A DNA stretch of 64,000 bases from Tubulanus polymorphus (GCF_964204645.1 NC_134034.1:1240001-1304000), one strand, 5' to 3'. Counted from the first letter of the stretch, positions 22,350 through 53,500 are shown. Notes: generated from the sequence alone by a model not told the origin. Numbers and translations: made by a program.

Positions 22350-22672
22350 ATCTGGATCCAGAACTGTGGAACTGGATCATGAACTGTGAAACTGAATCCA
22401 GAATTGTGGAACTGAGCCCGCCCCGCAGAACTGGAATTTGGTCCTGACTTCAACTGGATCCAGAACTGTGGAACTGGGTTCAGAACTGTGGAACTGGGTT
22501 CAGAACTGTGGAACTGAATCCAGAACTGTGGAACTGGGTTCAGAACTGTGGAACTCGGTTCAGAACTGTGGAACTCGGTTCAGAACTGTGGAACTGAATC
22601 CAGAACTGTGGAACTCGGTTCAGAACTGTGGAACTGGGTTCACAACTGTGGAACTGGATCCAGAACTGTAGT
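22350..22672. repeat. 20-bp minisatellite (cagaactgtggaactgggtt)
   Basis: Tandem units; same family at 30460-30700, 31855-32150, 35030-35130 and 36010-37215. Confidence 0.92.
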
Positions 22673-22803
22673 ATTGGACCTGGGATGTGTTTATTCGATT
22701 CAATGATATAAATCTTTTCATTTTTTTGCAGGTAATAATGTTGCAGTGACTAGCAGCCCCTCTCACCCCCTCACCCCCTCAGCTTGGCGTTTGTTTCAGT
22801 GAA

Positions 22804-28800: not shown

Positions 28801-31800
28801 ACTGGCCGACGCTGTTCTCATTTTATAACATATCATTGTTAAGCAGGTAGGAGTTTGTTTTCGATTATCTGGACCCAGATCCACAGATGTGAGTTAAGAT
28901 TTTATACAGTAAGACTTTATACAGATAAAACATTTGAAAATGAACTGATTCTTACTCACAACTGTGGAACTGGGTCCCGAGTTCGGGGTTTACTCTAACT
29001 CACAACCGCTGTCCAACTGGATCCCGAGTTCAGGGTTAACTCTAACTCACAACCGCTGTCCAACTGGATCCCGAGTTCAGGGTTAACTCTAACTCACAAC
29101 CGCTGTCCAACTGGATCCCGAGTTCAGGGTTAACTCTAACTCACAACCGCTGTCCAACTGGATCCCGAGTTCAGGGTTAACTCTAACTCACAACCGCTGT
29201 CCAACTGGATCCCGAGTTCAGGGTTAACTCTAACTCACAACCGCTGTCCAACTGGATCCCGAGTTCAGGGTTAACTCTAACTCACAACCGCTGTCCAACT
29301 GGATCCCGAGTTCAGGGTTAACTCTAACTCACAACCGCTGTCCAACTGGATCCCGAGTTCAGGGTTAACTCTAACTCACAACTGTAGAACTGGATCCTCA
29401 GTTCTGAGTTAACTCTAACTCACAACTGTAGAACTGGATCCTGAGTTCAGGGTTAACTCTAACTCACAACTGTAGAACTGGATCCTCAGTTCAGAGTTAA
29501 CTCTAACTCACAACTGTAAAACTAGATCCTCAGTTCAGGGTTAACTCTAACTCACAACTGTAGAACTGGATCCTCAGTTCTGAGTTAACTCTAACTCACA
29601 ACTGTAGAACTGGATCCTGAGTTCAGGATTAACTCTAACTCACAACTGTGGTCCTGGAATTAGCTTTTATTCAGGATGGTTAAGCCAGGGTGAGAGTTAG
29701 TGCAGGCAATGCGCTCGGGTTCGATAGTCTTATAGTTCATTCAACCGTGGAATTCGTGTTCTTGTGTTGTTCGCCGACGTAGATGACTTGCGCAACTTGC
29801 GTTTTCGGTCGACAACAGGTGGCGCCGCATCCGAACGCGGCCATGACGACACTAGCGACGAATAGGACGACGCCAAAGACCAAACGCGCGGCGGCGAGTG
29901 AAATCAATGGGTTGGCTTCATTTCGTCTCAGGTAACTTGTATCAGAAAGGTTCCAATACACGAACACCTCCACTATCGAAAAGACCAACAGGATGCCGGT
30001 GATGATCGCGGTGATGATCGCCATCACCAGACACGTGATCACGTAACATTTACGCGGGTTAATGGAGGCGGCGAGAGCGAATGCGGCGGTCAGAACGCCG
30101 ATCGGTATTTCCCAGAAACACATCGCTGTCGCCTCTGGAAGATAGTTATGCGAGCGGCGGGTGAGAATTTTGTACAGACGTATGATATCGACGATCAGAA
30201 TCAACGCGATTGCGACGAATAAAACGATTGAAATGATCTTCGCTCGTTTACGATATCGTGTTTCGGCCACGTTGTGTTTCGTCAAAGATTCCTCGATGAT
30301 TTCGCAGTTCGCCGGGACGCTCGCGGTTACCGGGGGCGATGAGGATTTCCGTCCATTGTCTTCATCTTCGATCAACTGCTCGAAATCCATCCCTGTTCAA
30401 CGATAAATTAATTAACTTTCATTGGATTGAAAATCAATATGATAACAGTTTTTGAACATGGATCCAGTTGCACAGTTGTGGATCCAGTTCTACAGTTCAA
30501 GATCCAGTTCTACAGTTGTGGAACCAGTTCTACAGTTCTGGATCCAGTTCCACAGTTGTGGAACCAGTTCTACAGTTGTGGATCCAGTTCTACAGTTGTG
30601 GATCCAGTTCCACAGTTGTGGAACCAGTTCTACAGTTGTGGAACCAGTTCCACAGTTGTGGATCCAGTTCTACAGTTGTGGATCCAGTTCTACAGTTGTT
30701 GTGTTCACGCCAGTAGTAATTGTATAAGAAGCTGTACTTTATTTGCGGTTTATATACAGTTACAAGTTACATAGGTCACATGACCGGATAATGCATGGCT
30801 ATTGGTTAATACAAGGAACGCCTCTAGACATTTACATGTAGATGATAAGAGTACACAGTCTCCGACAGCTGTCCGGAGTATCGATGTTATTAGTAATTAG
30901 TTCTTATCTCTATAGAAAGATGGCAACACCTGTCAAACATAGTGAAATATCAGTAATTGATGATACATCGCACCGTGGTGTAGACGCGCCATAGCGGTAC
31001 GTCTCTTATTCAATGCGCTGCGGTGGAATTTTTTGCACTTTCGGGTATTAATTAGTCAGCAGAGAAAGGGTTAAAGTCGGGGTGAGAGTTTAATCAGGAA
31101 ATTCCGCGGGTTTTTTCTGATATTTTGTCATTCACTCCGCTGCGGTGGAATTCCTGTTCGTGTGTTGTTCGCCGACGTAGATGACTTGCGTAACTTGCGT
31201 TTTCGGTCGACAACAGGTGGCGCCGCATCCGAACGCGGCCATGACGATGCTGGCGACGAATAAGGCGACGCTGAAGATGAAACGCACGATGCCCGTGGCT
31301 AATATCAGTCGACGGGTTCGATCACGACTCTCATTACCGGATAGAAATCTTACTAAATGTGAAAACAGTACAATCTCCGGTATCGACCGGACTAACAAGA
31401 TGCCGGTGATGATCGCGGTGATGATCGCCATCACCAGACACGTGATCACGTAACATTTACGCGGGTTAATGGAGGCGGCGAGAGCGAATGCGGCGGTCAG
31501 AACGCCGGTCGGTATTTCCCAGAAACACGTAAACGCCACCTGGTTGTAGAAATTCGTGATCGCTTCGTGAAGTCGTATGATATCGACGATCAGAATCAAC
31601 GCGATCGCGACGAATAAAACGATCGAAATGATCTTCGCTCGTTTGCGATATCGTGTTTCGGCCATGTTGTGTTTCGTCAAAGATTCCTCGATGATTTCGC
31701 AGTTCGCCGGGACGCTCGCGGTTACCGGGGGCGATGAGGATTTCTGTCCATTGTCTTCATCTTCGATCAACTGCTCGAAATCCATCCCTGTTCAACGATA

Positions 31801-34800
31801 AATTATTCAACTTTCATTGGATTGAAAATCAATATGATAACAGTTTTTGAACATGTACCCAGTTGCACAGTTGTGGATCCAGTTGCACAGTTGTGGATCC
31901 AGTTGCACAGTTGTGGATCCAGTTGCACAGTTGTGGATCCAGTTGCACAGTTGTGGATCCAGTTGCACAGTTGTGGATACAGTTGCACAGTTGTGTACCC
32001 AGTTGCACAGTTGTGGATACAGTTGCACAGTTGTTGATACAGTTGCACAGTTGTGGATACAGTTCCACAATCATGGATGCAGTTCCACATCTCTTGACCC
32101 AGTTCCACAGTTGTGGACACAGTTCCACATTTCCGGACCCAGTTCCCGAATTGTTGGTTGATAAGATTTGAGTCGAATTTGACTCAGGAATCGAAAACCG
32201 TTGAACTGGATTTATCTCTCACTTGGAGACTGAATTCTATTTTTTATTATATCTGATGTAATAATGAGGTTCAACTTAATTACAGTCAGCCCGCTTTATT
32301 CCGATCGGTTTTACTCGGATTTCGACGTATCTCGGATGATTTTTAAAAGTCCCTTCAGTTTCTTGTTATAATACCTTACAAAAATGTCACTTAATTCGGT
32401 TTGTATTATTCGGATTTTCGACTATTCCGAATTTGAATTTTCGAGACCCGTTTGTTCATATCCGTCGAAATCTTACCACTTTCATTCGGATGATAAATTT
32501 TGATATCGAATAGAGCACGGCGACAGTGCCGTGCGACGCGACGTGATGCAATCCACGCTCGATAGTCATAGCGATGTGCCGCGTTACGCGTCGCAATATA
32601 CAGTATATGATCAGGCAACGGTCTATTAAAATAGGCTAACGGTATTGATTGTTGCGATAGCAGGCCGTAAGCCCAACCCGACAGTCACCAACGTTCACGG
32701 GGCTTTGGATGTTCGAAACAGATTTGCACTGGCCAAGTCTACCGACGAGAAATTCGTCGATGGAGTATCGGTTTTCTCTCGGAAATGTGAGAACTTTCAT
32801 CAACGGGACGTCCCGAAACGCGCTAAGCAGACGTTGATTTCTGCCTTCTTTGTGAAAAAAGACCGAGACTGTTTATATTGCGATGGCGTATGGTTTATTC
32901 ATGATACAATGTAATAATACGTACAATAAAATTGATATTTTGTTTCGATCTGAAGTGCAACACTCATCGTCGTCATTTTCAATGGTAGAAGCATGGTAAA
33001 TTGCTATCTATTTAATTCGGATTTCACATAATTTTAGCGGTCCCGAGTGATCCGAATAAAGCGGGTTTGACTGTACCTTGATTCAGCATTGTAGAATCCT
33101 ACGTATTCTATATCTCGCAGGTACTGTGTAGCTGCTGCTGCTGCTGCTGCTGATGCCGATGCTGGTATAGTAGTAGTCAGTACTGTCGTTGTTGATTTCC
33201 GCTTGTGTTCTACTTTCTCTTCTGCCGTAGTTATTTGGGTCAGACGCGGACGAGACTGTGCGTAGGTTATTTTTTACCCTCATTAGACAAAGTACACAAA
33301 CGTACACGGTACCATTTGAATATGCTGCAGTTATACCGAGAGGCGATGAATTACACAACGCTATCGACAACATCCGTAAACGTTATCATCGGCTACAGAG
33401 AAAATTCTAACGGTTTCAGGAAATGTTTTCATTCGGAATAAAAGTTGACCTTGTTGACGCGATGGGAGTCGCGAGCGAGGACGGTTGCCGAATGGTTTTA
33501 CAATATGAATGAGGTTTTAAAACCGCCTGTTTACGATACAGTAGACTTCAGCCAGATTCGGACCGGTAGACCTCTTCCCCTTAACTCTTCTAGAACCAGT
33601 CCGACTGCTCCAAGTGGTCTAAAAGGGGCAGAAATGTTGGCGAAAAAAATCAGTCGATATTTTCTAGAAAAGGCTTATTCGAATCATTGCCCGAATAAAC
33701 TTTTTTTATTGATTTGTTTTTTCAGAAAATTTCCTAAGATCCTAAGCCGTGGATCTCGGCCTCTGTTCGGTTTACGAGGAATCCGAACTGAATAGTTAGT
33801 AATAAAACTGGTTTATTGTGGATCACTTCAGAGTTTTTAAAACAGCCCATAAAAACAACAATGTCGTAATTCAAGTTTGTTTATTTATGAAAATATTTGT
33901 CGATCATCTTTAGCTATAGATTTCATTTGTTAAAAAAAAAAGTGTTTATAACAATGATGAAGTTTAAAGGACAGAAAATATTTACAAAGTTTTCATTTTT
34001 AAGGAAACGGATTTTAACAGATTTTATAGTGTATCTACACCACGATGCGGTGTATAAATCAGTGATGGACTTAGCTAGTACATCGCGACATATTGTTGTA
34101 TTTATTAATTAGTTTTTACCTCTATTGAAAGATGGCAGCACCTGTTAAACATAGTCAAATATCTGTAACTAACGATACACCGCACCGCGGTGTAGACACA
34201 TTGAAGCAGTTTGCCCGTTATAGAATACACTGAGGTGAAATCTTTTTAAGTTATCCCCAGCACTGTCGGGTATTAATTAGTCGGCACTGAAACTGGTTAA
34301 TCCAGTTTTAGAGATAGACCAGGTGGGTCATTCACTCCGCTGCGGTGGAATTTGTGTTCGTGTGTTGTTCGCCGACGTAGATGACTTGCGTAACTTGCGT
34401 TTTCGGTCGACAACAGGTGGCGCCGCATCCGAACGCGGCCATGACGATGCTGGCGATGAGTAAGACAACGCTGAAGATAAAATGCACGATGCCGGTGGCT
34501 AATGATATCAGTTGACTGGTTCGATCACGACTCTCATAAGCGGATAGAAATATCACTAAATGTGAAAACAGTACAATCTGGATGCCGGTGATGATCGCGG
34601 TGATGATCGCCATCACCAGACACGTGATCACGTAACATCTACGCGGGTTAATGGAGGCGGCGAGAGCGAATGCGGCGGTCAGAACGCCGGTCGGTATTTC
34701 CCAGAAACACGTAAACGCCACCTGGTTGTAGAATTTGATCGCTTCGTGAAGTCGTATGATATCGACGATCAGAATCAACCCGATCACGACGAATAAAACG

Positions 34801-37800
34801 ATCGAAATGATCTTCGCTCGTTTACGATATCGTGTTTCGGCCATGTTGTGTTTCGTCAAAGATTCCTCGATGATTTCGCAGTTCGCCGGGATGCTCGCGG
34901 TTACCGGGGGCGATGAGGATTTCATGTCTTCATCTTCGATCAACTGCTCGAAATCCATCTCTGTTCAACGATAAATCATTTAAAAATAATCGGATTGAAA
35001 ATTGATTCAGTTGTACATTTGTGGATCGGATCCAGTTCCACTGTTGTGGATACAGTTCCACTGTTGTGGATACAGTTCCGCTGTTATGGATCCAGTTCCG
35101 CTGTTGTGGATCCAGGTCTACTGTTCCAGATCCAAGTGTACATTTGTGAATTTAGTTGTACGTTGTGGATCCAAGTTTATATTGATGGATCAAAAATCAA
35201 CAGTTCAAATATCATTATCTGTGCGTGTTGAGGAGGTAGGGGGTTAAATGTACTCTCTGGTCGTTTGTTTAGATAGTGCTACACTACCTTACGTGTAGAG
35301 ACTGTTGAGACTATTGAGGAATATTGACGAGTGTTTTTGTCGAGGCAGTTGTTAACCTAATTGTGAAAAACACCTTTAAACATCAATGATTTGAGATGAA
35401 ATACATTACGAAAAACAGTACCTTGATTCAGCATTGTAAAATCCTATGTCTCTCTCTCTCTCTTTCTCTTTGCTGGTTTTGTGTGCTGCTGCTGCTGCTG
35501 CTGCTATATTCACTTGTTATTGATCTCTACAGAGTTAGTTATTTGGGTCGAGACCCGACTGTATATGATGTGGTATATAAACCCTCATCAGACACCGCCA
35601 GTACTCGACTGCTGCTGTACTAAACTGCTGTGCATTTATTTCGGAGGTTTCTATAAGGAATTTCATTTGGGGAACTGATTTCGCATATGAAATTAGTCAT
35701 AGGCTGTCCATTTAAGACATCTGAGGTCGAGTGGGTAGGGTTAAGGGAGGTTTGTGGGGGTTTGTTTTGCCTTGGGGTATTTGGATGTGGACATTTTAAT
35801 TCCTGTAAGCCATCAGAACAAATCATGGACGATGATGATTTCAACTACGCATTAGAGGAGAAATAGTTCACATAAATGTATGGAACTACTAATTGTGGTT
35901 CGGGGAGTATTGAACAGTAAGGATATTTACGATTAACCGTAGACTTGAGCCACTAGACCTGATCATTATCAGTAGACCTCTCACCCTTAACTCTCTTGGA
36001 TCCAGTTCGACCTGAGTCCAGAATTGTGGATCTCAGTCCAGAACTGTGGAACTGTGTCCAGAACTGTGGAACTGAGTCCAGAACTGTTGATCTGAGTCCA
36101 GAATTGTGGATCTCAGTCCAGAACTGTGGTGCTGGGTCCAGAATTGTGGATCTCAGTCCAGAACTGTGGATCTGAGTCCAGAACTGTGGAACTGGGTCCA
36201 GAACTGTGGTGCTGGGTCCAGAACTGTGGATCTGAGTCCAGAACTGTGGATCTCAGTCCAGAACTGTGGATCTGAGTCCAGAACTGTGGAACTGAGTCCA
36301 GAACTGTGGAACTGAGTCCAGAACTGTTGATCTGAGTCCAGAATTGTGGATCTCAGTCCAGAACTGTGGAACTGTGTCCAGAACTGTGGAACTGAGTCCA
36401 GAACTGTTGATCTGAGTCCAGAATTGTGGATCTCAGTCCAGAACTGTGGTGCTGGGTCCAGAACTGTGGATCTGAGTCCAGAACTGTGGATCTCAGTCCA
36501 GAACTGTGGATCTGAGTCCAGAACTGTGGAACTGAGTCCAGAACTGTGGATCTGAGTCCAGAACTGTGGATCTGGGTCCAGAACTGTGGATCTGAGTCCA
36601 GAACTGTGGAACTGAGTCCAGAACTGTGGAACTGAGTCCAGAACTGTGGAACTGAGTCCAGAATTGTGGATCTCAGTCCAGAACTGTGGATCTGAGTCCA
36701 GAACTGTGGAACTGAGTCCAGAACTGTGGATCTGAGTCCAGAACTGTGGATCTGAGTCCAGAACTGTTGATCTGAGTCCAGAACTGTGGAACTGGAACCT
36801 GAACTGTGGAACTGAGTCCAGAACTGTGGATCTGAGTCCAGAACTGTTGATCTGAGTCCAGAACTGTGGAACTGAGTCCAGAACTGTGGAACTGAGTCCA
36901 GAACTGTGGAACTGAGTCCAGAACTGTTGATCTGAGTCCAGAACTGTGGATCTGAGTCCAGAACTGTGGAACTGAGTCCAGAACTGTGGATCTGGGTCCA
37001 GAACTGTGGATCTGAGTCCAGAACTGTGGAACTGAGTCCTGAACTGTGGATCTGAGTCCAGAACTGTGGATCTGGGTCCAGAACTGTGGATCTGAGTCCA
37101 GAACTGTGGAACTGAGTCCTGAACTGTGGAACTGAGTCCAGAACTGTGGATCTGAGTCCACAACTGTGGATCTGAGTCCAGAACTGTGGAACAGAGTCCG
37201 GAACTGTGGAACTCCCTCTCTTTCTTGAATTATGAATTTTTGAATTTTTCTCATTATTTCAGATATATCAGTATTTTACCCACGATGCACCTATCGGCCG
37301 TTATTGATCCGTCTGAAGCGATCTCACTGCGTCATCCGGCCGAACATGAAATAGCCGAACAAATCGCCGAGCAACGAAAACTCTACTCAAGGTCGGCGGA
37401 GCACGCCTCCGCGTATCAAATACCGTTCTCGAAACTGGATCCGTATTCGCAGAATTTGATGCTGCACGCAAAAAAACTGACGCAATATCCAAAATCGTCG
37501 AAAGAGTTTATCATCACGGTCGCCTTGGCGATCGCGAGCGCTTTATTCATCGTTTACATCGTCATGACGATGTACCGGTGTATGTGCTCTCGTAACTACG
37601 CCAAGTGGCGGTCGTCGTGGCGACGGCGTCCGAAACGTCGTCGATCGCTGTACTACGTGAAACAGATTCGCGAAACGGTTCCGCTGTTTCTGTGCGGACA
37701 CGAACAGGTAACACTAAATACAGGATGTGTTATAAACCTAGAATCAAATAGTTCACTGTTGGAAGAGGAAAAGTGTTTTTGTGAAAGTAGAAAAGATTTT

Positions 37801-44892: not shown

Positions 44893-47757
44893 ATGTCCGC
44901 GTCTAAACTTCTAATTCTCGTGGTTGCGATACTGCTTTGCCGCTATGGTGCCATATCGGAAATTATTGATGAAATCGACAGAACGCCGTGGAGTTCAGAA
45001 AGTAACTTACTAGATTATGAGAAATACCGGTCACTCGGCGGTAGTATGATGCTGTATTCTGGAATAGTCGACGATAAGCGGCGTCCAAACCGACGCGACG
45101 ATATCCTCAGCAGACGCTCTTACTACGGTTGCCCGTCGGTGTGTCGCTGTTATTATCAACGGGGGTAAGTTTGATATCTACTGCTGGGGCGGATTCATAT
45201 CTAAAATTGGAGGCTGGGGTCAAATTGAAAAGCTAAGACAAAGCGGTGTCAAGTGCGGGAGATATCACCCACGACTACACGCGATTAGAAGCGTTTTCAG
45301 AGAGAATGAGCGATCACTGTCTGGACAACCGGCAAATTCAATTAGAGAGAAACGGGCCCGAAACCCCGAACTCGCCCCATCCCTTGTACGTATATTAATG
45401 CTATGACATTTTATTTGATTTTAAAGAAACTTTCTTTTCGCAACATTTGCACCTGAACATATATTTTCAGACATGGTATCGCTAACTGCAGGAATAAAGG
45501 ACTCACGAAGTTCCCCAGAATAAAGAATTACATAAACATTCTTGACTTGTCGCAGAATAGGATAAAGAGTATAAAACCGTTCCGTCGATTGCCGAGATTG
45601 GAACGACTAGGATTCCGGGAAAACGCACTGAGTTCACTGGTGGGACACAAATCACTTCATTATCTACCGAATCTGACACATCTCGATGTTTCATGTAATC
45701 CAGTACAGTCTATTGACAAACAAGCTTTCATGAAGAATGAGTATCTGAAAAGGTTCGCTTACAATTTTATTCTGCTCAACAAGCCTCCAGCATTATCGAT
45801 AAGAAAAGTGTGTAATTCAAAGCACACTGTCGAAGATATTCACAATTTATTTCATTCTTTGCAAAATTGTGCTTTCTTAGAACTTTTATATTTACGAGGT
45901 GCGTGGCTGCTTGAAGCAATTTCGTTGACTACATCAATATTGAAATATTTACCTGTACAGAATTTGAAGTTTTTAAGCCTAATGTGTAATCGAATACCCG
46001 AAATAGATATAGGATTTTTCCATGGGTTTAAAAGTTTGGACATCCTGGAAATGTCATTTTGCAAAACGAATTTTCGAAAGCAACAATTCAAAGGACTCGT
46101 TAAACTTCAGACAATATTCTTGCCACTGAACAACATCCATAATTTGAATCTCACGGAATTCCTTATTTCCAGCCCAAAACTAAACATATTTAACGCATTA
46201 AATTCACCAGGTTTAACTTGCTTCGATAGTCGCACATCATTTCCCAAAAATAACAGACTAACAAAATTACTAATCTCATGTATCATTGGACTGGTTCCCG
46301 GTGAATCACCGTGTGGGGACCATGGTGTTCCCCTCGAGAAAAATTTCTATTTGAGGGAGGACATAAAAAACCTGCGGAATTTGCAAACCTTAGTGATTAA
46401 ATTAAATAGTCCTTTCGTATTCCTATGCCTGAAGTCGTTCGATCTGTTACCCGAATCTATGCATTATATCGGAATAGACAATCTTGCAGGACCGTTTAAT
46501 TATTATCTAAACAAACGATTGCTTCATAACGCGTGCGAAAGCCTTATGTGGAATAAGACGTTTTATAGACTAACTTGGTTAGTCCTTACTGGGACGATTA
46601 TTGGCAGCTGTCCTAGTCATGTACTCCGTCATATCCTGACTAGAGTTCCTTCACTAGAAACACTCGATCTCTCCAGTAATGGAATTAGACATTTGGATAG
46701 AAACACGTTTGAAGCAACACCTAGATTAAAGAACTTGAGGTTGAAGTATAACAGACTGTCCACGATTCAACCAGGTCTGTTAAAACCATTAACGAACCTA
46801 CGCGTTTTGAATTTAGCATCGAATCAACTGAAAACGTTCGATCCTGATGAAATCATGAATTTAAAACATTTTAGATCCATTTTTCTTCTCGATAATACAT
46901 TTGAATGCGATTGTCAACTGAGAAAATTGCGCAATCGGCTAAAAGAGTTAAGTAGTCATAGAACTAGGAAGCATTACTTATACGACTTTAGGGCAGAAGC
47001 CGAACACAATGTAACCACGCTCAAACTCCTTTGTACTTCACCAAGAAAACTATCCGGAGTTCCTATCGCAAACTTTCATTTACATTGGATAGAATGTGAC
47101 AACCACAAAGATATAATCATTTCTCTTTCGACTATTTGCGTCACTGCTATTATTATGGCTATTGGGAGAATTGTTGCCAAAAAGAAATGGCAAATTTACT
47201 ATTGGTGGATGGTAAAAATCAATCGATTTCTACCGAAACTATTACGTATAGCGACGGTAAGCCGTTCTGATGGTATGAAATTTGACGGATTTCTGAGTCA
47301 TAGCATGGAAGACCTTCAATTTGTCTATTTGGATTTCATACCCGAAATAGAAAAATCCAAAGATTTCGCTTCGAAGTTTTGCATCGAGTTTCGAGACTTT
47401 ACAATCGGTGCCTACATACAACAGAACAATATCGACGCTATTTACGGGTCTCGGTGGGTCGTGTTTTTGATGACCGAATCATTCATCGAGGAAAGATGGA
47501 CGGAATTTGTAATAAGCATGGCGGCAAACCGGTGCGTCGAGGAGGGCAATAACATCATACTCGTGCTCGATATCGATCATATACCCGAATCGCGCATGCC
47601 CGAATCCTTGCGGACGATCATTTCAAATGTTGTTTACATGAAATACCCGCGAGACGATAAAGCCCGTTCTACGTTTTGGAAAAAGGTTCGCCTTACCCTG
47701 ATCGGTAAACAGAAAAAATTCATACAGCCAGCTAATATGTATCGATCTAACCGCTAA
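44893..47757 (+). CDS. Toll-like receptor (single cysteine cluster type), 852 aa, 2 exons
   Basis: Exons 44893-45164 and 45471-47757 (2559 nt). Signal peptide, LRRNT CPSVCRC...C, LRRs (LETLDLSSNGI, LKNLRLKYNRL, LRVLNLASNQL), LRRCT NTFECDC...CTSP...C, TM, TIR (FDGFLSHS, CIEFRDF, FW). Confidence 0.93.
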
Positions 47758-49607: not shown

Positions 49608-52600
49608 ATGAACAACCTAGGATCTACAGCCACAATGATTTCATCGTGGGTATTTCTCTTACTAATACTGAGCCTACCGAACCCGGGCCTATCCCTGAGT
49701 CGAGTCGACTACCTGGCCCGGCGTAAGGCCGTCTTCGACGAGGAATTCTCGACTAGGATCGGGGCTAAATTGAAACTGAACGCGGCCGAAGCGTCCGTGA
49801 ATAAAATACTGATGGATGCCAAACGTAGCGAGATCGCGCAGGGTCTGGCAGACGGCAAATTCCCGCCGTCCAGACATTTTTTCTTGGCTCGAGACGATAT
49901 TGAAAAAAGTGCCGTTTTTAAAATCATCAAAATCATGCCGAAAGGTAAGGGTCACATTCTTATCTTTAAACCTTTTTTATACCTTTTTCAAAGAGCTTCT
50001 AGATTGTAGTGTTCTAGAAATCATTGATTAGAAAATGTCATTAAGAAATTTTTTTTCACTCAAAAATGCAATGAAATCTATTAAAATCATAGCGTTGTCA
50101 ATAAGTTTGTTCGGATTCAAATTTCACTGGTTTCGAACTTTCTAACTTGATCCAAATTGTACCTCTCTCCTCTCCTATCTCTCTCCCTCCCCTCGCTCTC
50201 TCTCGACTTTTTATTTCTCCATCTCTCTTTTAAGGAGCCATTCTGCACGCCCACGATTTGTCGATGCTAGACTTCCACGAGCTGATTAAGCTGGCCACAT
50301 ACTCACCTGATGTTTACATGTGTTTTACTAATGACGGCACATTACAGTTTAAATACATGAATAAACTGCCCGCTAAACCTGGTAAGAACGAATGTTTTAT
50401 TAGAAAAAAGAATATATCGAAAACTTTCAAAAGAACACCACGCCTCGTGAGAGAGAGTCCGAAAGATGACCTTCTTTCAAAACAACAGACCCCGATTTCA
50501 TAGAACAGGTATCAAAATGATCCTATAGTTGGATGCAGAAGCACCCAATGAAAACTTTGAGCTTTTCATGACCCCCCGTAAAAAGTATTGTGGGATGCGT
50601 AAATTGAATTACAGCAACAAGTCTGCAGTGTTCACGATCCTGAAATGTATAGCTCTAATTTAGATGAATTTTTTTAAGTATGGTGTTTATGATTTTACAG
50701 AATGCAGTTGGAGGAATGTAATGAAAGCTCGTGACGAGGCCGCCTCTCCGGAGGCGTTCGACAATATGTGAGTCATCTATTTGTGACAGGTTTAATTAGT
50801 AAAACTAGTCACCACACCTGACCGGCCACCAGTCACAGCACTGTCCAACACGTGACTGGTCACCTGCTACCACACTGTCCAGACAAACTTACAAGCTAAC
50901 TGTATCAAGCATGTATGGTCTGGTGGTTAGCATAGTTGGTTGGCATGCTTGTGGTCGCAGGTTCGAGTCCCGCTTTGGGTTGCCGACGACCTATGGTTTA
51001 TGGCTATTGGGTCGCAGATTCGGTTACGGTGAACCCAAAATCTAATCATCATTTTATCATTATCCCGTGACAGGAAATTTGAACGTATGAAGTAAATACT
51101 TTTTAATCAGTTAGAATCTGAAATATCGGCGATTCATTTTTATCGTTATTTGTTCGACATTTTGTTGATATTTTGATATTTTTATGAAAAATGATTCAAC
51201 GTTATCGCGCACCTGTTACAACAGGCCCGTTTCCTGTGATTAGAATAGATTATTCATAATCAGATCAATTAGTTGCTAAATTTTCCTTTTCACGTTATAA
51301 GTTTTTTACTCCTTTTTTTCTGAATTTATCAACCAACAGGTTGTATAAGAAAATTGGTGCCACATCAAGTTCGAATCCCGAGAATGCAATATAAATTTCA
51401 TTTCTATAATTTTCATAAGCATCACGCAGCTGTACAGAAAACCCGTTATCGTTGCTTTGCGGCTATATTTATTCTTTTCTCCTCGTTTTTCATAAGCATC
51501 ACGCTGCAATGCAGAAAACCCGTTATAGCTGCTTCGCGGCTATATTCATTCTTTTTTTCTTAATCAAATAACTGTCAGGTTGTATAAGAAAATGAGTTTG
51601 GAGACGCCCAACCCGCAGAAACTGTACCCGACGATAAACGCCGTCTGGAAGCGGTTTTTTAACGTGTTTCTATCGATTGGTGGATTGGTACATTACAAAC
51701 CGTTGACGGCTAAATTTCTGGAGGCCGCTTTCAAGTCAGCCGTGGAGGACAATGTGCAATACATGGAAGCGAGATCCCTTTTGACCAAGGTGAAAAATAT
51801 GAAAATACTTATAGAACTTTGGGTTTTCTTAACTTCTTGACTTTTACTTGTACTTACTGATAAGATACCGAAAACTGACCAGCTGCACAGTCATGTCTAA
51901 GTTCATTTTCGTTTTATAGTCAATACCAGTCTGAACTAACCTTGTTTCTAAAGCAAATCTAAAAATGTAAGATTTTTTGATTTAAGACACGAATGTGCAA
52001 CTTGGCCTACTCGGCTTCACGGCAATTATTCCTCACTTACTCGGTAGAATATTGGACCCAGTCCGACGGTTAAGAAAAATTACTATAATTCTAAATTTCC
52101 AGACTTATAACATCGACGGTTCGTTGAACAGTCGCGAGGAATCGTTGGACATTTTACGTTTAGCCACTCAGGAGTTTGTAAAAGATTACCCGAACGATTT
52201 CGCCGGGTTCAAGGTCATTGGCTCGGCGATTCGGTACGTAGCAGTCACGTGACCGACACGCGAATGATAAAGATTATTGATTTGCATATGAATTATTTTT
52301 CTCGTTATTTTTGAAATTGCAGAGCTCAAAACGCGTCGCTGATCGGTGACCGGGTGAAAGAGGCGATCCAATTCCGTCAGAAATACCCGTCGTTCTACGC
52401 CGGATTTGACTTGGTCGGTCAGGAGGACCCCGGACATTCGCTGCTCTATTTTCTCGATGATCTGTTATTACCGTCGCAGATGAACCCACCAGTCGATCTA
52501 CCGTACTTCTATCACGCCGGCGAGACCAGTAATCTAGTTACCTTCTCCCTATGACATCATCAAATAGACCCTTCTTTAACAGATCGTCTCCATAATCTTC

Positions 52601-53500
52601 TTATGACATCAAATTGTCTACTAGTGATTTAATCTATGGACACTTCTAGAACAGATATCTGCCACCATAAATCCCCCTATGACGTTATCAATGATACTGT
52701 TTTGTTTCAGATTGGACCGGGTAGGATGTCCGCCTCCATGAATCCCCTTATGACATCACCAATGATACTGTTTTATTTCAGATTGGAACGGGGAGGATGT
52801 CGATGATAATATGGTTGACGCTGTATTGTTGAATACGTCACGTGTTGGTCACGGGTTCGCCATACTTAAACATCCGTTCGTCGAGAAATCTATTCGAGAA
52901 AAACCGATCGCGGTCGAGTTAAATCCCGTGTCTAATCAGGTGAGAGAGGTAGAGAGAGGTAGAGAGAGATGGAGAGAGGGGGAGAGAGGGGGGAAGGTCG
53001 GAGACAGGTGAAGAGAGTTGCTGAGAGGTCGGCTCAATAAGTGTCTGAATTAAGGTGTATAAATATTTTGTAGGTGTTAAAACTGGTGGATGATTTAAGG
53101 AATCATCCGGCCTCGGCTTTATTCAGCACCGATTACCCGGTGGTCGTGTCTTCTGATGATCCAGCGATCTGGGGAGCTTTACCGCTATCTCACGACTTCT
53201 ACATGGCGTTCATGGGCTTCGCGTCTGCCGAGGACGACCTCAGATTGTTAAAACAACTAGCCATCAATTCGATAAAGTAAATAATATCCAAATATTAGAT
53301 TTAATATGAAATTAAATAGGCTAGATTTTTAACTAAATTTTGTCATCACTCTTGAAATTTCTCTTTTTCTAAACGTGCGCAGATACAGCGCAATGAGCGA
53401 TGAAGAGAAGGTCAACGCGTTTAGACTTTGGCAGACGAAATGGTCGCAATTCATAGACAAAGTTTTAGCTGAAAATCGCTTCAACCAACAAATTAACTGA
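49608..53500 (+). CDS. ADA2: Adenosine deaminase 2 (CECR1/ADGF family), copy 2, 525 aa, 9 exons
   Basis: Exons 49608-49944, 50235-50381, 50701-50767, 51579-51789, 52103-52233, 52323-52528, 52782-52939, 53074-53276, 53383-53500 (1578 nt); exons 1-8 have the same lengths as in copy 1; catalytic motifs intact. Confidence 0.95.
52530..52781. repeat. ~79-bp satellite in ADA2 copy-2 intron 6, including a 71-bp duplication of the splice acceptor
   Basis: aatgatactgttttgtttcag-attggaccgggtaggatgtc vs aatgatactgttttatttcag-attggaacggggaggatgtc. Confidence 0.85.

Follow-up and report, generated by a model that had tools for sequence, protein, structure and literature searches.

The SCAP intron that spans positions 28847-37262 of the window (the whole stretch of 64,000 nucleotides that was analysed) in the ribbon worm, or nemertean, Tubulanus polymorphus contains three paralogous open reading frames on its minus strand, and our favoured reading is that a small gene for a CD20/MS4A-like membrane protein was multiplied here by ordinary tandem duplication, giving two complete copies and a partial one that lacks a promoter. 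We lean, by a modest degree, towards the joint reading in which the copies designated B and C are two autonomous tandem genes and the third, A, is a partial duplicate relying on an upstream promoter. Among the papers listed by a literature search, none dealt with this T. polymorphus locus and none with MS4A genes in nemerteans.

Organization of the Locus

The host gene is identified by Pfam matches to SCAP_N, the sterol-sensing domain and the SCAP beta-propeller, all on the plus strand and flanking the array on both sides, and the intron itself runs from a GT (28847-28848) to an AG (37261-37262), in agreement with the first-pass annotation, which had named this intron as the host. That annotation had also placed three paralogous minus-strand ORFs here, each starting 2 nt past an acceptor and each with a downstream AATAAA (29666, 30738 and 33880), and all of these elements are present where it had put them: the acceptor AGs lie at 30394-30393 (A), 31789-31788 (B) and 34962-34961 (C), and the hexamers at 29671-29666, 30743-30738 and 33885-33880, respectively. 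Exon C has an additional, earlier AATAAA at 34106-34101. The coordinates of the individual features are collected in Table 1.

Table 1. Features of the three-copy array, listed from 5′ to 3′ along the minus strand (window coordinates).
Feature	Position	Strand	Details
Promoter-proximal module, unit C	35536..35594	-	14-nt motif 35594-35581, then TATA-like TTATATA, then GACCCAAATAACTA 35549-35536
Start exon 1	35422..35535	-	5′ UTR with (CAG)n; ATG 35434-35432, CTG AAT CAA G; GT donor 35421-35420; unmapped 5′ end
Intron of unit C	34961..35421	-	20-nt minisatellite 35028-35125; splice inferred from RefSeq protein
Terminal exon C	33860..34960	-	CDS 34958-34332, 208 aa; 3′ end approximate
Promoter-proximal module, unit B	33228..33289	-	14-nt motif 33289-33276, A-rich TATA-like stretch, GACCCAAATAACTA 33241-33228
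Start exon 2	33077..33227	-	5′ UTR with (CAG)n; ATG 33089-33087; GT donor 33076-33075; unmapped 5′ end
Intron of unit B	31788..33076	-	1289 nt, removed in RNA; 20-nt minisatellite 31859-32144
Terminal exon B	30720..31787	-	CDS 31785-31132, 217 aa (222 aa with start exon); 3′ end approximate
5′ edge of partial duplicate A	30393..30701	-	20-nt minisatellite 30459-30699; intron tail of ~65 nt, almost the same as in B; acceptor
Exon A	29650..30392	-	CDS 30390-29737, 217 aa from own ATG; 3′ end approximate

A and B are 78% identical, and B and C about 92%. A 28-nt context that ends in the acceptor AG and leads into the ATG is the same ahead of A, B and C except for one G/A difference in C, and exon bases 1-42 are identical in A and B; the two first differ at base 43, where the minus strand has G in A (30350) and A in B (31745). 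A high-copy repeat occurs in the 3′ UTRs of C (about 34102-34197) and B (about 30890-30985), and exon A has an unrelated 3′ UTR of its own. Mosaicism resembling that left by gene conversion is visible among the copies.

The coding part of each start exon amounts to 13 nt. A 19-mer across the ATG and the donor has exactly two copies in the window, at 35437 and 33092, and no third start exon was detected there when up to 4 mismatches were allowed; in a whole-genome BLAST, the region of start exon 2 matched only the region of start exon 1 and (CAG)n microsatellites. These searches bear out the earlier claim that there are only two start exons and none between A and B. About 190 nt upstream of both start-exon ATGs align with each other; the promoter-proximal modules are homologous, and within the window the two module motifs (the 14-nt motif and GACCCAAATAACTA) have exact copies ahead of the two start exons and nowhere else. 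Motif searches within the window found neither of these motifs, and no start exon, upstream of A.

Minisatellites of the same family, in direct orientation, precede every coding exon, and the homology between A and B begins within such a minisatellite, at about 30694-30701. The intron of unit B also contains a MITE-like insertion (about 32283-33073) with an inverted repeat and a TA target duplication. A repeat similar to the minisatellite lies in another SCAP intron (22396-22703).

Protein Family and Predicted Fold

The first-pass annotation had guessed at an MS4A/CD20-like family, a guess that passes homology tests by relatives, profile search and fold search. Its suggestion of a search with the CD20 profile PF04103 fared unevenly, as the direct scan was negative and the scan of relatives positive: hmmscan of A, B and C against Pfam at E values up to 10 gave no CD20 match, a result bounded by the sensitivity of a single profile, whereas phmmer against 1.84 billion representatives returned 25 non-self matches (E 1e-8 to 8e-4), the named ones among them including an 'MS4A4A-like' protein of a fish and one from Owenia, and in an alignment of these 25 relatives with five T. 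polymorphus paralogs PF04103 was matched by 26 of the 30 sequences (best E 5e-34). The nearest relatives share only about 25-31% identity. A word-indexed protein collection contained no T. polymorphus fragments of at least 119 aa. When a profile built from the five T. polymorphus paralogs only was compared with the PDB, the top six matches were all of the MS4A family, led by Fc-epsilon-RI beta (E 5.7e-4) and then CD20 (E 3.8e-3).

An AlphaFold2 model (pLDDT 77), folded from an alignment that included CD20 members, has four long helices at residues 35-83, 86-111, 115-152 and 160-196. The top three Foldseek matches to it are Fc-epsilon-RI beta chains, with a probability of 1.0 and a target TM score of 0.67-0.80, at E values of only about 0.01-0.04. 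In the ESM Atlas, CD20 clusters account for 28 of 30 feature matches, and the structural TM score to an MS4A3 cluster is 0.71. The proteins are therefore predicted to form a four-helix transmembrane bundle of the MS4A fold. Their N- and C-termini would be cytoplasmic and the TM1-2 and TM3-4 loops would face outward, to judge from the basic cluster RYRKRAK that precedes TM1 (positive-inside rule) and from the analogy with CD20. No ITAM-like motif is visible in the protein tails.

In A, B and C the cytoplasmic and transmembrane scaffold is nearly identical, and the differences fall in the two predicted extracellular faces. This pattern is as expected of variants in ligand or partner recognition, although the word 'receptor' is a guess. 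An acceptor immediately precedes the ATG in two more distant paralogs (L004 and L005) as well, and their N-termini align with the MDFEQ ATG, which by this comparison is the ancestral start codon of the family.

Transcripts and Database Records

Splicing of start exon 2 to B, a junction that the first-pass annotation had predicted, is seen in one RNA contig of run X3 (33077>31787, depth 127.5). The joint (31786/33076) skips 1289 nt with CT..AC on the plus strand, which is GT..AG on the minus strand, and the contig carries 86 nt upstream of the junction, 47 nt of it aligned, and is of the B type at the discriminating base. Both X2 and X3 are labelled '?', and X3 was counted as RNA on the strength of this one spliced contig; run X5, the one whose record pointed to RNA, gave no aligned contig. 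The start exon 2 to B junction is the only one read, and contigs collapse the first 42 exon bases that A and B have in common, so that junctions into A and C are unreadable in them. The interior of C is uncovered in X2 and X3, and the junction from start exon 1 to C comes from RefSeq alone. An A-specific contig (29820-30021) has a depth of 56.9 in X3, about half that of B, whose specific pieces lie at 109-127; such depths are a poor guide to expression. Elsewhere in the SCAP intron the X3 background is 0-18. At the level of contig presence only, A is transcribed.

Several other joints were considered and set aside. An X3 record that links 33075 to 30497 and contains 21 additional letters looks like a further genomic copy of the MITE beside a satellite rather than a splice, and most of the remaining contig joints are repeat artefacts that link minisatellites or the high-copy 3′ UTR repeat with a short side of 18-32 nt. 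One joint outside these groups, 34067>34121, skips 53 nt and sits inside the 3′ UTR of C.

RefSeq groups isoforms B (222 aa) and C (213 aa) under one uncharacterized locus, LOC141911664, each with the MLNQ start exon. The B protein begins MLNQG-MDFEQ and has two accessions, and RefSeq gives two transcripts for it; C, RefSeq isoform X3, begins MLNQE-MDFEQ. Exon A is represented at NCBI and UniRef as a protein of 217 aa from the internal ATG, in a single-member cluster, which means that the annotation pipeline, using RNA data, made no model that joins a start exon to A.

Probable Origin and Expression of the Partial Copy

On the favoured reading, a CD20/MS4A-like gene of two exons has formed a lineage-specific tandem array, antisense within the SCAP intron. 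The ancestral plan of the gene would have joined a short 5′ exon to one large exon with a poly(A) signal of its own, which encodes the entire four-helix membrane protein; the 5′ exon in this cluster contributes a 5′ UTR and four codons together with an in-frame ATG. Both C and B appear to be complete units, each with a promoter-proximal module, start exon, minisatellite-bearing intron, coding exon and poly(A) signal. A would be a partial duplicate whose 5′ breakpoint fell in the intronic minisatellite, probably through unequal crossing-over, and which would have retained the acceptor, an intact ORF with its own ATG in a strong context, and a poly(A) signal, and come without a promoter module or 5′ exon; the module is missing because the copy begins inside that minisatellite. 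Since A is nevertheless transcribed, it most likely depends on the promoter of B or C. Its transcripts could arise by splicing from donor 33077 or 35422 to acceptor 30392, or by read-through past the poly(A) site of B, and it is plausible that A serves as an alternative last exon.

The first-pass annotation had proposed one or two transcription units that choose among last exons. The promoter-proximal module is duplicated, so that B has one and C another, and the two therefore look like autonomous genes and not like one choosing unit. A regulated form of it, in which either start exon, in one or two units, would pick one of the terminal exons C, B and A to the exclusion of the others such that one variant is made per cell, we regard as possible but unlikely. 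The two start exons have the same donor and the three terminal exons the same acceptor, which leaves every pairing in frame (the earlier claim to this effect holds for B and C by their RefSeq proteins, and for A only by way of the identity of its acceptor with that of B); B and C are isoforms of a single RefSeq locus, the pair of transcripts that RefSeq gives for the one B protein would agree with splicing to B from start exon 1 as well as from start exon 2, and A is found in RNA contigs without a start exon of its own. However, the only junction in the contigs is the nearest-neighbour one, B and C keep separate promoter modules as independent genes do, the NCBI records include A only as 217 aa and contain no 222-aa MLNQG-A protein, and the proximal acceptor of B should normally outcompete an identical but more distal acceptor at A.

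Another reading, that A is an independent gene of 217 aa with its own, non-homologous promoter in the 3′ flank of B or in the minisatellite, and that its acceptor is a relic of recent duplication or gene conversion, we likewise regard as possible but unlikely. The protein on record is exactly the 217-aa form, and its ATG has a strong context (GGGATGG) and is the same as the ancestral start codon of the family. The TATA-like TATATAAA at 30756-30749, about 360 nt upstream of this ATG, means that an independent start for A may exist, although it overlaps the region of the B poly(A) signal and may be there by chance. The intron tail shared by A and B is as near-identical as are the constant coding blocks, so that conservation of the acceptor is uninformative about selection. 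On the other hand, the promoter motifs common to B and C are missing upstream, and an unspliced leader would have to run through two short upstream ORFs and a minisatellite of 240 nt.

We think it rather improbable that A is a non-functional orphan duplicate whose RNA is read-through from B or noise and whose ORF is intact by virtue of recent gene conversion. The lack of a promoter and 5′ exon would suit such a duplicate, as would the constant blocks, which hardly differ from those of B even at synonymous positions, consistent with recent conversion, and the AATAAA of B, which has no obvious GU-rich downstream element where those of A and C do. Yet the ORF of A is open across 217 codons despite two heavily diverged variable blocks, which conversion from B or C cannot explain, the A-specific depth is well over the X3 intron background, and A has a poly(A) signal of its own with that GU-rich element.

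Switching at the DNA level, in which recombination between the direct 20-nt minisatellites ahead of the coding exons would delete B, or C plus B, in the germline (as copy-number variation) or somatically and so place A behind a start exon, is scarcely credible: the breakpoint of A does lie within a minisatellite, and a joint in a DNA-like run (30560>32090) would remove B, but its short side is 21 nt, it falls in a satellite with depths in the thousands, the repeat at 22396-22703 is alike, and no long piece supports it, so that its most likely source is a wrongly placed contig of the satellite.

Significance and Comparison with Known Systems

If the favoured reading of two autonomous genes and a dependent partial copy is true, the locus is a tidy but ordinary example of tandem duplication in which a repeat gave rise to a partial copy, and the cluster would belong to an invertebrate branch of the CD20/MS4A family that has diverged. 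The main use is in annotation, where RefSeq proteins now listed as 'uncharacterized' can be named CD20-like. The locus would also offer a small natural test of whether a promoter-less duplicate can survive by borrowing its neighbour's 5′ exon, and a constant scaffold with variable outer faces would make these proteins candidate recognition molecules. Were exclusive choice true instead, this would be a one-variant-per-cell, non-GPCR chemosensor family in a spiralian. In the mouse, the necklace olfactory neurons are reported (Greer and colleagues, 2016) to have MS4A proteins as chemosensors.

In vertebrates, the coding sequence of an MS4A gene is divided among several exons. The resemblance of the worm proteins to members such as MS4A1/CD20 and MS4A2/Fc-epsilon-RI beta extends to the four transmembrane segments, the short cytoplasmic TM2-TM3 turn, the Cys after TM4, the tandem arrays and the concentration of paralog differences on two extracellular faces. 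In the worm, by contrast, the protein lies wholly in one exon, the array is antisense in a SCAP intron and one copy is promoter-less.

The clustered protocadherins and UGT1A have in common with this locus an array of large paralogous exons that encode the recognition part of a membrane protein and a possible choice of one per transcript. Their variable exons are first exons with their own promoters, joined to common 3′ constant exons, whereas those of the worm are terminal and encode the entire protein, and the constant part is a 5′ UTR plus four codons and is itself duplicated. A mirror image of the protocadherin/UGT1A logic, in which either 5′ exon would pick one of three putative receptor exons, stochastically or by cell type, and A would be reached only by skipping B, strikes us as distinctly improbable.

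Drosophila lola and mod(mdg4) are alternative-last-exon genes with a large common N-terminal coding region and many proven junctions. As there, the isoform would be defined by which terminal exon is used, every one of them ending at a separate poly(A) site, and an acceptor and a poly(A) signal are present for each of A, B and C; the worm locus, in contrast, shares nothing functional and has one proven junction. From ordinary tandem duplicates with a promoter-less partial copy, which automatic annotation often merges into a single locus, the array does not differ in any essential respect, and it shares with them the duplication boundaries, the duplicated promoter modules, the breakpoint in a repeat and the gene-conversion-like mosaicism.

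Anatomy of the Cluster and Its Host Gene

The SCAP host gene lies on the plus strand, with SCAP_N, sterol-sensing and SCAP beta-propeller matches on both sides of the cluster, and the intron that carries the cluster (28847-37262) ends in GT and AG. On the opposite strand lie three paralogous frames, A, B and C, with identities of 78% for A/B and about 92% for B/C. All three share a 28-nt context running from the acceptor AG into the ATG, with a single G/A difference in C, so the exon starts 2 nt ahead of the ATG. There are exactly two copies of a 19-mer spanning the short start exon with its donor, with the ATG at 35434 (start exon 1, upstream of C) and at 33089 (start exon 2, upstream of B); a third copy was not found with up to four mismatches allowed, and a BLAST of the start exon 2 region against the whole genome matched only the start exon 1 region and CAG microsatellites. 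The first-pass annotation had described this layout of three frames with their acceptors and AATAAA signals, two start exons and an enclosing SCAP intron, and it was borne out in every detail.

Coding exons and poly(A) signals of the cluster, distant paralogs elsewhere in the genome, and database proteins
Feature	Position	Strand	Length	Remarks
ORF A	29737-30390	minus	217 aa	
ORF B	31132-31785	minus	217 aa	
ORF C	34332-34958	minus	208 aa	
AATAAA of A	29671-29666	minus		3′ of ORF A
AATAAA of B	30743-30738	minus		3′ of ORF B
AATAAA of C	33885-33880	minus		3′ of ORF C
Additional, earlier AATAAA of C	34106-34101	minus		
L004 paralog	1444-2121 (G000 C1)		225 aa	single coding exon
L005 paralog	1495-2157 (G000 C2)		220 aa	single coding exon
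MLNQG + B			222 aa	XP_074658757.1 and XP_074658758.1; LOC141911664 isoform X2 (NCBI), isoform X1 (UniRef)
MLNQE + C			213 aa	XP_074658759.1; isoform X3
Bare A protein			217 aa	NCBI and UniRef; one-member cluster

Both ends of the SCAP intron (36012-37210 and 28968-29646) are occupied by large satellite arrays akin to the 20-nt intronic minisatellite. One array has 60 copies and stops some 50 nt short of the SCAP acceptor. This repeat family has a high copy number in the runs, and inspection of frame translations by eye showed a similar repeat in another SCAP intron (22396-22703). A 47-nt-period array lies just past the poly(A) signal of A. Downstream of SCAP are a leucine-rich-repeat-like open frame of 766 uninterrupted codons (45457-47754, plus strand) and, further on, exon-like frames (52315-53277, plus strand).

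Duplication and Promoters

In self-comparison, C matches B in the start-exon region, and the match resumes from the minisatellite into the ORF and over parts of the 3′ UTR, while the A/B match is limited to the stretch from about 30700, inside the minisatellite, to 29747, just before the stop codon. A 20-nt minisatellite precedes every coding exon, and because the A/B match begins inside it, A is a partial copy with its 5′ breakpoint in that array. About 190 nt upstream of both start-exon ATGs can be aligned, comprising two conserved blocks that flank a TATA-like element, along with a CAG repeat. An exact search of the window found both blocks upstream of each start exon and nowhere else; neither was found upstream of A. 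B and C are thus complete genes, each with a promoter-proximal module, which A lacks. The cluster consists of two two-exon genes that look autonomous and one copy devoid of a promoter module.

The copies are also mosaic (minus-strand segments 29737-30471, 31132-31866 and 34332-35040 were compared). A and B hardly differ in the intron tail and in three coding blocks (0-3 differences per 30 nt, with even synonymous changes scarce). In two blocks, the TM1-TM2 loop and the outer TM3-loop-TM4 region, they have diverged heavily, mostly through non-synonymous changes; between B and C the pattern is reversed, the loops being similar and the intron tail diverged. The segments thus differ in history, a sign of gene conversion or unequal exchange.

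The intron that follows start exon 2 is interrupted, two bases in, by a MITE-like element about 790 nt long (32283-33075; terminal inverted-repeat arms at about 32283-32306 and 33049-33073; TA target duplication); the donor of that exon is still functional. The 3′ UTRs of B (30890-30985) and C (34102-34197) have in common a segment of a very high-copy repeat, whose contig depth ranges from the thousands into the tens of thousands in each of the three runs with aligned contigs.

Transcripts and Existing Annotation

Read evidence came from Logan contigs of four runs. Run X1, flat at about 26x over unique pieces, looks like DNA. In run X3, one 474-nt contig (depth 127.5) covers 31399-31786 without mismatch and continues at 33077 and upstream, skipping 1289 nt with GT..AG ends on the minus strand; it contains the predicted splice from start exon 2 to B (33077>31787). 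The genome holds three close copies only, all at this locus, and no retrocopy, so the contig represents RNA. Most other contig joints were discarded, since they connect minisatellites or the high-copy 3′ UTR repeat with short sides.

Depth in X3 is 109-127 over B-specific pieces, 66 over a C-specific 3′ piece (34170-34384) and 56.9, with zero mismatches, over an A-specific piece (29820-30021), against 0-18 in the remainder of the intron; A is thus very probably transcribed. Its 5′ end is unreadable in contigs, because the first 42 exon bases are identical in A and B and contig building merges near-identical paths; the DNA run itself has almost no depth over the 5′ part of A.

A collection of 5.8 billion proteins returned only three, all from the nemertean Tubulanus polymorphus. 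Automatic annotation already groups B and C as isoforms under a single uncharacterized locus, and their MLNQG and MLNQE N-termini match exactly the start-exon use first proposed from sequence. For A, the only annotated start is the internal ATG, and the proteins returned include no MLNQG-A product.

How Copy A May Be Expressed

The point of interest at this locus is how a promoter-less copy gets expressed. A probably arose through unequal exchange in the minisatellite. Its transcription would most likely start at the B or C promoter, with A used as an alternative last exon (donor 33077 or 35422 to acceptor 30392) or reached by read-through. Donor-to-A splicing is our tentative reading, put forward as a possibility short of an even chance. 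That A has its own start site in the 3′ flank of B is rather unlikely, albeit consistent with the presence of TATATAAA at 30756-30749 and with the 217-aa NCBI form. It is improbable that A is an untranslated read-through or dead copy. The wider model first proposed, one unit choosing among mutually exclusive terminal exons, stays a minor possibility, weakened because B and C have duplicated promoters and no long-range junction turned up in the collapsed contig data. Expression of A via DNA rearrangement is very improbable indeed.

The distant paralogs L004 and L005 (20-22% identity to B in the alignment containing them, A3) bear on what A encodes. In both, a splice acceptor lies a short way ahead of the ATG, and their N-termini align with MDFEQ; the ancestral plan is therefore one coding exon preceded by a 5′ UTR exon, with the second-exon ATG as the ancestral start codon. 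The five additional start-exon residues are a cluster-specific add-on, and A encodes a full protein without need of them.

Family Assignment

The likeness to CD20/MS4A proteins noted in the first-pass annotation drew nothing from a direct Pfam search of A, B and C alone, but was upheld by relatives, profile and predicted fold. Exhaustive phmmer found 25 non-self relatives, among them an MS4A4A-like protein from a fish and a protein from Owenia, and PF04103 (CD20) was matched by 26 of the 30 sequences in the alignment of these relatives with the five T. polymorphus paralogs. A profile of the five paralogs alone matched Fc-epsilon-RI beta (MS4A2, E 5.7e-4), then CD20 (E 3.8e-3), and its top six PDB matches were all of the MS4A family. 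The AlphaFold2 model (pLDDT 77) has four long helices, its best three Foldseek matches were Fc-epsilon-RI beta chains, and ESM Atlas agrees with an MS4A-like assignment. By homology and predicted fold, the three proteins are thus filed as divergent members of the CD20-like/MS4A family. Overall, this is ordinary tandem duplication within a known family, to which the cluster adds a new and divergent member, already machine-annotated as isoforms.
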